Shown here: positions 30,256 to 60,592 of the stretch, one piece after another
Numbering within the stretch: position 1 is the stretch's first letter
Layout of the letters: each line of letters begins with the position of its first letter
Source: Macrostomum lignano
Taxonomy: Eukaryota
Direction: 5' to 3'
Assembly: GCA_002269645.1 (NCBI GenBank)
Contig: NIVC01002178.1
Coordinates: forward strand, 124,001 to 188,000
Length of the DNA stretch: 64,000 nucleotides
The notes under the pieces: model-generated
Database searches by the model: none
Seen by the model: the letters and a program-made list of their open reading frames with translations, nothing else
Told to the model about the DNA's origin: nothing
Position numbers and translations under genes: made by a program

Positions 30256-30926
30256 ATGATACAGGAGTTCGCTGGACCTGCGGTGCCCTACCACCATCAG
30301 CAGCAGCCGCCGCCTCCACCGCCGCCACCGCAGCAGCAGCAGCAGCAGCAGCAGCATCAACTGTCTCTGGGCTCTGGCGGATCCTTCGGCTTCACCCAGG
30401 AGCAGGTCGCCTGCGTTTGCGAAGTTCTTCAACAGAGCGGCAGCGTCGACCGTCTGGCCAGATTTCTCTGGTCGCTGCCGCAGTGCGACCAGCTGCACAA
30501 GAATGAGAGCGTCATCAAAGCCAAGGCCATGGTGGCCTTCCACAGGGGCAACTTCAAGGAGCTCTACAGGCTGGTGGAGAGCTACAGCTTCGCGCCGCAG
30601 AACCACGCCAGGCTGCAGGAGCTGTGGCTCAAGGCGCACTACATCGAGGCTGAGAAGCTGCGCGGCCGGCCCCTCGGAGCTGTAGGCAAGTATCGCGTCC
30701 GCAAGAAGTTCCCGCTGCCCCGGACCATCTGGGACGGCGAGGAGACCTCCTACTGCTTCAAGGAGAAGTCCAGAAATGTGCTGCGCGAGTGGTACACGCA
30801 CAACCCCTACCCGTCACCGAGGGAGAAGCGAGAGCTGGCCGAGGCAACCGGCCTCACCACCACCCAGGTGTCCAACTGGTTCAAGAACCGGAGACAGCGG
30901 GACCGGGCGAGTGACGTGAAGGACGG
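30256..30926 (+). CDS. six1/2: Six1/2 (sine oculis) copy A, exon 1: Six domain + homeodomain
   Basis: [17 protein letters not shown]...[37 protein letters not shown]...[12 protein letters not shown]; the ETSY tetrapeptide defines the Six1/2 class. Donor GG|GTGAGT at 30927, phase 2. Confidence 0.97.
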
Positions 30927-30959
30927 GTGAGTTGGGGATCCTTGTGGGCTCTCATGTCT

Positions 30960-31190
30960 CTGTCTGTCCACCCGTCTGTTCATTCCCGCTCCCAACCGTC
31001 TGTTCATTCCCATTCCCACTCTCTCCCGTCTGTTCATTCCCGCTCCCTCCCGTCTGTTCATTCCCGCTCTCTCCCGTCTGTTCATTCCCGCTCCAAACCC
31101 TCTGTTCATTCCCGCTCTCTCCCGTCTGTTCATTCCCGCTCCAAACCCTCTGTTCATTCCCGCTCTCTCCCCTCATCTCCGTTTCTTCAT
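30960..31190. repeat. ~24-bp minisatellite (CCGTCTGTTCATTCCCGCTCTCTC)n in Six1/2-A intron
   Basis: Tandem units. Confidence 0.9.
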
Positions 31191-31819
31191 TCCCATTCTC
31201 TCAGTCCCTATAACATTTGCACTTTGAGATGTGAACAATAGTTGAATATTCAATAAAGAAAATTGAAGGTTTTAAATAGCAAATTGGCTACGGTGCCAAA
31301 AGAAAAAGCGAGTGAGAGAAAGAGAGTGGGAAATTGCTGAGATGAACTGGTAAAATTTATGTTGCAAATATTTCATACGCCCCCCTGTATAACAAACGGC
31401 TTAAATCGGCATGGCAAGCAAGTATAACAAATGACGCTTTTGCCGCGCCATTACTTTCATGTGTTTTCTGTTTTGCTAACGCCTTCCCGTTAACTTTCTC
31501 AATCGGTTACAGTTGCTCCAGCGGCAGCTTAGTAGCGCCTAAGGTTTTTTGTAGCAAACTTACTTCTTTTGGTTATAATAATGTTAATGCGACTTCTCCA
31601 TTTCTCCGCTCGTTCTTGTCGCTTCTGAAAGCAGAATTTCTGCCTCAATTTTTCGTTGCAACAATTAAATATTCATTTGTTTATTTGCTTGACTTCATCT
31701 ATTGCCCAATATTTTCTTCATATAACTTTGCTTGTACGAGTGGAAGAGGTGAGAATGCACTAGAAGATTAAGACAACCCAGAAATTGCGTCAGTGGAGAA
31801 TCCCAAGGAGAAAAATACA

Positions 31820-32056
31820 GGGTAGAGATAGACAATGGAGAGATAGACAGGGGAGAGATAGACAGGGGAGAGATAGACAGGGAAGAGATAGACAGGGGTG
31901 AGATAGACAGGGGAGAGATAGACAGGGGAGAGATAGACAGGGGAGAGATAGACAGGGGAGAGATAGACAGGGGTGAGATAGACAGGGGAGAGATAGACAG
32001 GGAAGAGATAGACATGGGTGAGATAGACAGGGGAGAGATAGACAGGGAAGAGATAG
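31820..32056. repeat. 15-bp minisatellite (GAGATAGACAGGGGA)n
   Basis: About 15 units. Confidence 0.95.
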
Positions 32057-32664
32057 CCAGAGGCCTGTCTCAAGCCAGGATGAAGACCCCAAACAAGCAG
32101 GCAGCGGCACGAAAAGCAGAATCAAGTAGTGGCATGGAGTGAATCGGAGAAAAGGAAGCGCGCTACAATATTAACGAAAAAATGTTAATCAACCAACAGC
32201 CCCCACCCGGCACAAGCGAGGCCGCAGTCCCGACTGTCACTCTATACAATAAATAAAGCTGCGTGTTGAAGGCACCAACCGTTTCTCTGCCTGGCGCAGA
32301 GTGGCACGAAGTGGTCAAAATGCTCTCTTATATTTCGAGCCGTTGCTTGCGGTTACCGCAGCTCATAAATAAGGCTGAAATCGAGCAAACCGACCCACGG
32401 CTGAACTCGGCAAGATGACACCGAGAGGGTAGCCTGAGTTGTAGGGGGGGGGGGGGGTCATCCGAAACCGCGTAGGAGCAATCAGAGTGTTTAAAGTGAT
32501 TAAACTGTTTAATTAGCTATTTAAATTAGTGCCTTTTTATAACAAATCTGATATGCGAGTAGAAAACTTACTATGAAATAACTTTGTTTTGGGCACATTG
32601 GTTCGTTTTTCGACTACTTGGATGGCCGACCATAATTAGTAACGAGTTTAGTATTAGTAATGCA

Positions 32665-57530: not shown

Positions 57531-58395
57531 TCAGCCAATTCGCTAATAATTCAAGCCTTTAAACAGTTCAAACACCTGGTTTTTAGTTTCTAATCCTCTA
57601 GCTCGAGAACCGTTTTGCTCAAACTCTAAATCTATTCGAAATGATTTTATCCAGGTGTTACTTCACTCGATGTAAGATTTACAGTTGATCGAATTCTTTA
57701 AACCAACCTTAATCTAAACCAAATCAACCCAGGTCTGAATACAGTGGGATGAATGCCTTCGGGGCTTGAGCACCCCAGTCCAGCTGGTCATACGCCACCA
57801 CCGCCGCTGTTCCTTGCTTTTTTTCCCCAACCGCTACCCCTCTCCCAAGTTTGAACTGTTAATCAAGGGGGACCCCCCTATCCGTCATTTGGCCATCAAA
57901 CTTGTCACTGATAGCAGGGCGGGCAGGCAGTATCCACCTGGAGCTGCATACTGGAGACTGCCCTGCCCTGTTCCCATATGGACCCCGGGGACAGCCTCTG
58001 CTCATTAGCCTCGCGAGCATGTGATGCAACACCTTAACTAACCCGCGCCCCGTGCGCATTCTCGGTATCCTTGTAATTAAAATACTCAACTATGTATGAG
58101 CTCATTGTAAAATTTGAATCCAATTTTGTTCGCTAATATAGAGTAAAGCTATTTTCCAGCTAACCGACAGATTGGGGCGCGAGAAACTCGACAGTTCGCC
58201 GAGCTTATCTGGGCGAATCATCTTGGCGGCTCGCCTTTCGGCTGGTCTGAAAGGGGACAAGAATTCACTGGGGCGCTGCCCGATGGGAGAATGCAAGGTC
58301 GTCAGCTTTCACCGGAACTGGCCGTGCCAGCCCAGCAGATCCGGTTGCTTCCGGCTCTTGCAGATCCTGCGGCACCCCATCTGCTCAGGGAGCTT

Positions 58396-58567
58396 TCTGT
58401 CTGTCTGTCTGTCTGTCTGTCTGTCTGTCTGTCTGTCTGTCTGTCTGTCTGTCTGTCTGTCTGTCTGTCTGTCTGTCTGTCTGTCTGTCTGTCTGTCTGT
58501 CTGTCTGTCTGTCTGTCTGTCTGTCTGTCTGTCTGTCTGTCTGTCTGTCTGTCTGTCTGTCTGTCTA
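58396..58567. repeat. (TGTC)n microsatellite
   Basis: About 42 perfect units. Confidence 0.98.
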
Positions 58568-59213
58568 TCTTTAAATAAAAATACTCCCATTTCAGTTGCA
58601 AACATTTCCCCAAATGGAGTTGCTACAATAATTTAAAATATGCAAATTTATGCGCCGTCAACAAGTCAGTGACTCGCTCCAGCCGCACGCAGCCGCAGGC
58701 ACTGGATGCACTGGACCCAGTCGCGAGCCTAATGACCCGGATACATGCAGAAAGTCGAACGCCCTTTGTTTCTCCGGCTCGGCGGAAGTCATAAACAAAC
58801 AAGAAAGCCCCCAGCAGCTGCTGTAGAGGCGACCTGGGCACTGGGGGATCGGGGAGTCCCCAATCGGCTTCCCTCCGAAACCCGAGATCCGCCTGCCCGG
58901 CCGCCCCTCACTCCGGCAAGTTTTTAGCGGCGCATAGCAACTAAAAAAAATCGAAAGTAGGAATTGATGAGGGGTTGGGGGTGGTGACAAACAATTTCGT
59001 CACACCTTGGCTGAGCCGCCTCGTCACTCGGGTGCCGGGTGCTTCTGTCTCCATCGTCCCTCGCCAACCAACTGTCTCGCCTTTGCCCTCCTCTGCCACC
59101 CCAGCCCAGAGCCGTCGAATGGGTAAGCTGATACCCCCCCCCCCCCTAACTCGGAGATTTCCGAAGGGCGAAAGGAGAAGGCGCGATAGAGAGAGAGGGC
59201 GCGAGGGCCGCTG

Positions 59214-59230
59214 CCCTGCCAGCCAATCAG
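59214..59230 (+). promoter_or_regulatory. CCAAT box upstream of Six1/2 copy B
   Basis: CCCTGCCAGCCAATCAG, nearly identical to the motif upstream of copy A; about 590 bp upstream of the ATG. Confidence 0.45.
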
Positions 59231-59819
59231 AAACCCGATAGGCCCTGGCCGGCTGGGGGGGGGGCTTCGGCCGCGTCCCGGTTTTTACCGCCGAATTTCT
59301 CACCAGCCCGAGTCCGCATCCGCATATTGTCACTCTCACCGTCACTTAAGCCGACTCGCCGCGTCCCATCCCGTTTCCAATTTCAATCTCGCTGACTCCG
59401 CTGGCTTTTGTGCGCTTGGTTCAGCTTTCATATCAGCTTTCACAGTTATTGTTTTCGCTTTCTGAGGAGAGGGAGAGACAGAGACGACGGACTTGAAGGC
59501 CAGAATCTCGCGGATTGATGACACGGCTGGCTCGGCAGCGACAGGAATAAGCCGCGCCAGGAACTCGTCAGGATCGTCTTGCGCTCAAGCGCTCGCTCGC
59601 GAGAGAGAGTAGGGCTGGTAGGTAAGTCAATCTTATCCACAGCGGATCGGGTGTCTCAGGCACTGTAAAGCGAGATAGAGAGGCGGAGTGGCGGCAGTAG
59701 GGCTGGGAAGTAGAACCCGATCTCACTCTGCTCACCGCTAACTTCTCCGCTTACTGTTCCGCAGTCGGCAGTGAAATATAGGGCCAAGCGAGGCGGCAGC
59801 GAAGCCCCAGCCAGGCCAG

Positions 59820-60592
59820 ATGATCCAGCAGTCCCAGGACTGTTATCTACCCTGCGCATCTGTCGAAGACCGAGCCTACAGTGAGCAGACTCTGCAACAG
59901 CAGCAGCAACAACAGCAGACCCAGACTCCTCAGCAGGCAACTCAGAGCCAGGAGCTTCATCAGCTGATCCCGCAGCATCACCAGCCGATTCTGTCAGCGG
60001 ATGATTCCGAATGCTCAGTCGGCGGCGCCGCTGGCGCTGGCAGCGGCGGGTGCCGGTTCACCCAGGAGCAGGTGGCCTGCGTGTGCGAAGTCATGCGCAG
60101 CTCCGGCGACATGGACCGCCTGTCCCGCCTGATCTGGTCTCTGCCGCCCTGCGAGCAGCTGCACCGCAATGAGTCCGTGCTCACCGCCAAGGCCTACGTG
60201 GCCTCGCACCGGGAGAACTACAAGGAGCTCTACAGGATTCTGGAGAGTCACAACTTCTCGCCACGGCTGCACCCGCAGCTGCAGGCTCTGTGGCTGAACG
60301 CGCACTATCGCGAGGAGGAGAAGGTCAAGGGCCGGCCGCTCGGCGCCGTGGCCAAGTACCGGGTGCGGCGGAAGTTCCCGCTGCCCCGGACCATCTGGGA
60401 TGGCGAGGAGACCTCCTACTGCTTCAAGGAGAAGTCCAGACAGGTGCTGCGCGAGTGGTACGCGCACAACCCCTACCCGTCACCGAGGGAGAAGAAAGAG
60501 CTGGCGGAGGAGACCGGCCTGACCACCACTCAGGTGTCCAACTGGTTCAAGAACCGGAGACAGCGGGATCGGGCAGCTGACGGCAAGGACAA
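59820..60592 (+). CDS. six1/2: Six1/2 copy B, exon 1: Six domain + homeodomain (rest of gene probably beyond the window)
   Basis: [17 protein letters not shown]...[23 protein letters not shown]...[10 protein letters not shown] with the ETSY tetrapeptide. Donor AA|GTGAGT at 60593, phase 2, at the same position as in copy A. Confidence 0.96.

Follow-up and report, generated by a model that had tools for sequence, protein, structure and literature searches.

Within a 64,000-nucleotide stretch of the genome of the flatworm Macrostomum lignano (positions 124,001 to 188,000 of contig NIVC01002178.1, assembly GCA_002269645.1; hereafter the window), we found two tandem genes of the Six1/2 (sine oculis) class, here called A and B, which lie on the plus strand in direct orientation, 29,666 bp apart. 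Their Six domains are old and divergent, whereas a bounded stretch of the same exons, consisting of the linker and the homeobox, is homogenised at synonymous sites. This pattern was probably produced by non-crossover ectopic gene conversion, in which the linker and homeobox of A would have been copied onto B long after the duplication. An earlier note on this DNA had described an apparent conversion tract between the two homeoboxes; the analysis below upholds the homogenisation, refines its limits and finds a mosaic inside it.

Synonymous homogenisation of the linker and homeobox

The first exons of the two genes were aligned codon by codon, without gaps, from the FTQEQ motif onward (position 30391 in A and 60057 in B); in the aligned part, a position in B equals the position in A plus 29666. 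Across the Six domain (codons 1-105; 30391-30704 in A and 60057-60370 in B), there were 86 nucleotide mismatches (72.7% identity) and 34 amino acid differences, and 22 of the 71 identical residues were encoded by different codons. The best internal control is the segment directly upstream of the break, codons 94-104, in which the single replacement is G/A99 and 8 of the 10 identical residues differ synonymously. At codons 99 and 105, the residue hardly varies among 172 Six1/2 proteins. Directly beside this segment is a run with one synonymous difference in 23. The homogenised tract as a whole (30706-30906/8 in A versus 60372-60572/4 in B) contained 12 mismatches (94% identity), with four amino acid differences (N/Q129, T/A136, R/K147 and A/E152) and different codons at 5 of the 63 identical residues. 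The codon alignment thereby reproduced the counts that had been made by hand in the earlier note for the Six domain, for the last 11 codons before the break and for the tract.

Synonymous divergence between A and B (dS, Nei-Gojobori) fell from 0.62 in the Six domain to 0.16 in the tract, and a sliding-window analysis, which the earlier note had proposed as a check, showed that the fall is abrupt: the proportion of differing synonymous sites (pS) was 0.63 for codons 86-105, 0.08 for codons 106-125 and 0 for codons 116-145. The difference in synonymous codons between tract and Six domain was significant (Fisher p=0.001). The low-dS stretch is thus bounded by divergent coding sequence of the same gene pair, as is expected of gene conversion. 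We also confirmed that the two genes have unusual codons in common within the tract, namely TCC AGA (codons 127-128), TCA CCG AGG (142-144) and CGG AGA (167-168); elsewhere in A and B, AGA makes up ~5% of Arg codons and TCA ~9% of Ser codons. When the six-fold degenerate Arg and Ser codons were taken together, 12 of 12 were identical in the tract versus 2 of 11 in the Six domain (p=7e-5), and the matches in the tract use four different Arg codons, with AGA occurring twice. Furthermore, a GENECONV-style permutation test (our own implementation, run on a four-sequence alignment with mismatches allowed) returned 30705-30822 as the best A-B fragment (p=0.0008), and A-B was the only significant pair; the strict version of the test gave p=0.07.

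The homogenisation is not uniform along the tract. Its core in A, the putative donor (codons 106-149; 30705-30839), has one synonymous difference among 41 identical residues, and the 3’ part (codons 150-172; 30840-30908) is intermediate, with 4 among 22; this part may mark the tract's edge or an earlier event. The corresponding tract in B, the putative acceptor, spans 60371-60574. In both genes, the first codons of the tract overlap the end of the Pfam SIX1_SD match, ~10 codons ahead of position 1 of the homeodomain, and the tract therefore comprises the linker and the homeobox rather than the homeobox alone. The earlier description of homogenised homeoboxes was accordingly right about the low synonymous divergence, and its limits can be refined, strong homogenisation being confined to codons 106-149. 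The conversion tract proposed there is likewise a homogenised and bounded stretch but not one clean block. Inside it, between 30775 and 30846 of A, are four islands of paralogue-specific codons: codon 129 (30775-30777; AAT in A, CAG in B), codon 136 (30796-30798; ACG in A, GCG in B), codon 147 (30829-30831; CGA in A, AAA in B) and codon 152 (30844-30846; GCA in A, GAG in B). What has survived inside the tract is differences, not similarities.

Outside the tract, codons 29-79 of the mid Six domain (30475-30627), a segment chosen post hoc, showed 5 synonymous differences in 32 identical residues, compared with ~12 expected from codon usage (p about 0.002-0.004). This low stretch lies among many replacements and could reflect an older or partial conversion or a stronger local codon bias.

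Age of the duplication and probable direction of transfer

Among 177 retrieved Six1/2 proteins, the Six-domain signatures of B were found only in its own UniRef models, in the B-like protein P0124 (locus L001 of assembly GCA_046766455.1) and in planarian Gtsix-1 (P0166). The most A-like sequence was P0005 (locus L002), from the Tara Pacific coral long-read metagenome ERR14224705. Bootstrapped neighbor-joining trees were built for the Six domain and the homeodomain separately. In the Six-domain protein tree, B grouped with P0124 and Gtsix-1 at 98% bootstrap and with P0124 at 79%, while a grouping of A with B received 0%. Because the Six domain of B groups with that of planarian Gtsix-1, the duplication is older than the split between macrostomids and planarians, in agreement with the earlier assertion that the Six domains are old. 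These sequence comparisons thus point to an ancient duplication, after which A kept the canonical sequence, and they place B with Gtsix-1 in a B-type lineage of flatworms. The possibility of a recent duplication followed by fast evolution of one Six domain was rejected, both on the 98% Gtsix-1 clade and on the 22 differing codons of the Six domain, which are close to the ceiling of 27-35 expected from codon usage. A Six-domain profile search for further Macrostomum or B-type sequences returned short fragments only and no new B-type gene.

The two domains of B differ in their affinities. In the homeodomain tree, P0124 and Gtsix-1 grouped without B (73%). The Six domain of B carries the B-type signatures DMDRL, LTAKA, EEEK.KG and AVAKYRVRR (the last being AVAKYR.RR in its general form), whereas its homeodomain lacks the B-type signatures Y107, A129, D148 and M152, a set defined by two sequences only, and has F107, Q129, E148 and E152 at these positions. 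Among 172 Six1/2 proteins, P0124 and Gtsix-1 were the only ones with Y107, A129 or M152, and besides these two, D148 occurred in one further protein. At positions 107 and 148, B has the residues of A and of canonical Six1/2 proteins (F107 and E148), and its Q129 and E152 are unique to B. A B-type Six domain joined to a non-B-type homeodomain in one gene is the product expected from overwriting by A. The argument for direction therefore rests on the missing B-type homeodomain signatures of B rather than on T136, N129 and A152 of A, which were considered as proof of an A-type homeodomain and rejected as weak, these being common states among Six1/2 proteins. In addition, at all five synonymous differences within the tract, B has the derived state when compared with both outgroup genes; this fits A as the donor, although polarity taken from saturated outgroups is weak.

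Site patterns in a quartet of A, B, L002 and L001 (AB|ab : Aa|Bb : Ab|Ba, with a and b denoting L002 and L001) shifted from 16:20:5 for the Six domain to 14:2:1 for the tract (Fisher p=0.0055). On this distant quartet, the flank thus sorts by orthology, and the tract joins the two paralogues of one genome. L001 and L002 themselves share I130, where most Six1/2 proteins have V, as well as several synonymous states among homeodomain codons 110, 111, 119, 120, 130 and 153; overall, they differ at 40% of synonymous codons.

Similarity between the two loci is confined to the coding sequence of exon 1 (30391-30935 versus 60057-60601), and the introns and downstream sequences cannot be aligned. Similarity that ends inside exon 1 excludes a crossover and fits non-crossover conversion between tandem genes; an unequal crossover generating a hybrid gene was rejected for this reason. 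In the mechanism that we propose, repair of a double-strand break in one gene would have used the neighbouring paralogue as template, and one or more conversion events would have copied ~30705-30908 of A (core 30705-30839) onto B. Protein constraint may have preserved enough nucleotide identity to seed a heteroduplex in this stretch only, and extension of the heteroduplex would have been stopped by the 36 nucleotides upstream, which are 67% identical, and by the unalignable intron downstream. The four surviving codons might be explained if selection eliminated tracts covering them and so produced a mosaic, or if B diverged again under selection at a later time.

Alternative explanations and the mosaic codons

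The G+C content at third codon positions (GC3) is 0.86-0.92 in both domains of A and B, and codon bias therefore had to be excluded as the sole cause: a GC3 of ~0.9, together with selection for translational accuracy, might lead both genes to settle on the same preferred codons at conserved residues without any exchange of DNA. Shared bias does appear to lower divergence generally, since the A-B difference in the Six domain (31% of identical residues) is below the 42-53% found between species. However, a codon table drawn from the rest of the two genes (588 codons) predicted 30 differing codons in the tract, and a second, deliberately conservative table built from the Six domain and homeodomain themselves predicted 23-25, compared with the five observed; none of 200,000 codon-usage simulations reached a value of five. 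For the core, 14-19 differing codons were expected from codon usage versus the single one seen. Moreover, the codons that the genes have in common include not only preferred ones but the rare AGA twice, TCA, AGG, and TCC three times, and both the complete agreement of Arg and Ser codons in the tract and the free synonymous variation of codons 94-104, where the protein is unchanged except at one residue, are at odds with bias alone. A and B also share states that differ from both outgroups, namely TCC versus AGC at codon 120 and AGA versus CGC/CGA at codon 128 (AGA versus CGN/AGG when codons 128 and 168 are taken together); as read from the alignment, GC3 bias cannot be the source of the states at codons 120 and 128. 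We regard codon bias alone as very unlikely. A function at the nucleotide level, for example as RNA structure, exonic enhancer or target of small RNAs, could instead constrain synonymous sites in both genes. The low-dS stretch does coincide with the most conserved segment of the protein, and such a constraint could be lineage-specific. Yet dS across species was saturated in both domains for all pairs (Six domain 1.1-1.65; homeodomain 0.8-2.5), among them A and B paired with their closest available relatives, and three unlinked Six1/2 paralogues of Limulus polyphemus, used as a same-genome control, were as divergent in the homeodomain as in the Six domain (synonymous differences in Six domain/homeodomain of 0.62/0.59, 0.61/0.57 and 0.38/0.38). 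Equal synonymous conservation was thus found neither in orthologues nor in the paralogues of another genome, and cross-species synonymous constraint on the homeobox is absent as far as the data allow. These controls support the earlier argument that the synonymous drop exceeds what protein constraint explains; that note had also named an equally low homeobox dS between species as grounds for abandoning conversion, and the distant species compared here gave the opposite. The derived states that A and B share at codons 120, 128 and 168 indicate common descent rather than parallel constraint, and we consider a nucleotide-level function extremely unlikely as the cause.

A third possibility is an assembly or polishing artefact, in which one paralogue was corrected with reads of the other or a chimeric contig was assembled. 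Three features favour such an artefact: the recent polyploidy of M. lignano, the very high repeat content of its genome, and the absence of both exon-1 open reading frames (ORFs) from the public contig collection. On the other hand, the tract is not identical but carries 12 differences, and the flanking Six domains differ by 27% in nucleotide sequence, which makes cross-mapping of boundary-spanning reads unlikely. The B residues Q129, K147 and E152 are also present in the independent UniRef models P0123 and P0125 of M. lignano, and the recurrence of B-specific homeodomain residues (SRQVL and LAEET) in such models argues against an artefact peculiar to this assembly, though it is no substitute for reads. 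Altogether, the chance that the tract is artefactual seems slight in the extreme.

Several observations nevertheless weigh against gene conversion. The A and B sequences were read from the assembly alone. A strict, GENECONV default-like run that permitted no mismatches was not significant (p=0.07), because the four replacement codons interrupt the tract. The low A-B divergence in the Six domain noted above (31%; dS 0.62) implies that the shared GC3 bias of ~0.9 explains part of the similarity between A and B everywhere, not only in the tract. Only two related flatworm-type sequences, L001 and L002, had DNA available for comparison, one of them from a coral metagenome, and clustering of the homeobox within species was examined on the distant quartet alone. 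Finally, the ratio of nonsynonymous to synonymous divergence (dN/dS) in the tract is ~0.25, versus ~0.03-0.05 for the homeodomain in other comparisons, which would be odd for a single recent conversion.

The last of these points bears on a variant of gene conversion, in which conversion has recurred over a long time in balance with selection, through many short tracts rather than a single discrete event or a pair of them. Of the four replacement codons, three carry two-base differences in a tract that is 94% identical, and such clustering of the 12 mismatches has p=0.012. The elevated dN/dS, the graded divergence from the core through the 3’ part to the mid Six domain, and K147, which is common to B and Gtsix-1, also favour the variant. 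In contrast, Q129 and E152 are unique to B rather than ancestral to the B type and may be substitutions that followed conversion, positions 129, 136 and 152 are variable among Six1/2 proteins generally, and the statistics on subregions are post hoc. We therefore view long-term recurrence as a possibility but not a likely one. The earlier note had called the conversion recurrent, for which we found weak hints only, in the contrast of core and 3’ part and in the mid Six-domain stretch. The four residues correspond to homeodomain positions 14, 21, 32 and 37 in standard numbering, in helices 1 and 2 and not among the DNA-contact residues of helix 3; for this assignment, W48 is taken to be codon 163. 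A more specific and somewhat more doubtful proposal is that repeated short tracts homogenise the homeobox while selection holds these four surface residues of helices 1 and 2 apart. If so, the homeodomain would carry paralogue-specific functions, for example partner contacts, at the four positions, and conversion would systematically erase orthology among flatworm Six1/2 homeoboxes. The adaptive interpretation offered earlier, that conversion preserves DNA-binding specificity, is unneeded: Six1/2 homeodomains are near-invariant across Bilateria through purifying selection alone, so conversion is not required to keep that specificity constant.

The Six1/2 locus and comparison with known systems

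Both genes have the architecture of the Six1/2 class, with a Six domain followed directly by a homeodomain (Pfam SIX1_SD 1.3e-48 and Homeodomain 1.7e-14 in A; 9.6e-45 and 1.3e-15 in B). The tetrapeptide at the start of the homeodomain is diagnostic of the class, being ETSY in Six1/2, QKTH in Six3/6 and ETVY in Six4/5, and both A and B have ETSY. Their best database matches were SIX1, six1 and sine oculis proteins with 80-88% identity. In gene A, the canonical-type gene, exon 1 (30256-30926) opens with an ATG at 30256 and encodes a Gln/Pro-rich N-terminus, the Six domain and the homeodomain in one ORF, which ends at a phase 2 donor (GG|gtgagt). Exon 2 (35898-36624) follows the acceptor tttcag|C, continues the frame from phase 2 to a stop codon at 36622-36624, and encodes a low-complexity C-terminus to which nothing at the B locus is similar. 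Outside the conserved domains (30256-30390 and 35898-36624), low-complexity runs include poly-Pro and poly-Gln at the N-terminus and poly-Gly, poly-Ala and His-rich segments in exon 2. Exon 1 of gene B, the flatworm B-type, Gtsix-1-like gene (59820-60592), begins with an ATG at 59820 and ends at a phase 2 donor (AA|gtgagt), and exon 2 lies past the end of the window. The protein of gene A had no entry in the searched protein collection, and gene B was present there as two garbled UniRef models, P0123 and P0125. The N-terminus of the B product matches these models nearly residue for residue, and the mismatches are confined to the garbled stretches of those older models.

Minisatellite arrays begin ~20-45 bp from the exon-1 splice donor in both Six genes (30968-31174 and 60614-61782), with unrelated units and periods of 24/48 in A and 12/28/80 in B. 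The window is dense in such arrays, with ~20 distinct ones (27 overlapping TRF rows) between 28 and 64 kb. No third Six gene was found in the window, and the only other homeobox there belongs to a LIM-homeobox gene on the minus strand (3760-5005), with two LIM domains at 4853-5005 and 4664-4828 and a homeobox exon at ~3760-3900 (Pfam Homeodomain E=3.5e-19), in which an intron follows WFQNRR. We presume this gene to be Lhx3/4-like. Two long ORFs lie between the Six genes, at 41424-42191 (minus strand) and 47473-48108 (plus strand), one of which is Gln/Gly/Cys-rich; neither had a Pfam match above threshold, and each could be either a gene or an ORF that arose by chance in a GC-rich region.

Several consequences follow if conversion from A to B is correct. 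Trees of flatworm Six1/2 genes based on the homeodomain would misplace B of M. lignano, given its B-type Six domain and canonical-looking homeodomain. The pair would be a clean case within a single exon, in which protein constraint preserves a seed of identity and thereby leaves very old tandem paralogues open to ectopic conversion. As M. lignano is a model animal for regeneration, the four codons that have stayed distinct offer convenient candidates for sites of paralogue-specific function; the related planarian genes act in the eye and nephridia. The understanding of how gene conversion works is unchanged by this case. Planarians also have two Six1/2 genes, six1/2-1 (Gtsix-1, eye) and six1/2-2 (nephridia) (PMC4176530), and the Six domain of M. 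lignano B groups with the former; that A corresponds to six1/2-2 would be a guess.

In the tandem L and M opsin genes of primates, conversion is accompanied by selection that keeps a few sites distinct; there, the duplication is recent and conversion takes in entire exons and introns. The Six pair resembles the opsins in that neutral sites of tandem paralogues have been homogenised and a few codons persist as islands, functionally distinct in the opsins; it differs in that selection on the four homeodomain residues is inferred only.

Conversion limited to the homeobox of linked paralogues is already known from Capitella Dlx and insect engrailed/invected, and the Six pair of M. lignano is a new example; our literature search found no paper that joins gene conversion with sine oculis paralogues, and none for Six genes. 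In the annelid Capitella teleta, Dlxa and Dlxb are closely linked duplicates with gene conversion restricted to the homeobox (McDougall et al. 2011; PMC3199776). As in M. lignano, the homeobox is near-identical in nucleotide sequence, the rest of the gene is divergent, and the tract, ~150 bp in Capitella, is mosaic; the authors’ caveat that homeobox conservation can mimic conversion (PMC3199776) is relevant to both. The Capitella genes are arranged tail-to-tail and their tract extends into an intron, whereas the Six genes form a direct tandem 29.7 kb apart with a tract wholly within one exon. The M. lignano pair also belongs to a different family, Six1/2, and its duplication was shown to be older than the split between macrostomids and planarians. 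Concerted evolution of hexapod engrailed and invected (Peel et al. 2006, as cited in PMC3199776) provides, in the form summarised there, a further parallel of ancient linked homeobox paralogues whose conserved domains were homogenised by conversion, obscuring their orthology. That case concerns another gene family, another orientation and many species, while the case in M. lignano comprises one genome and two distant relatives.

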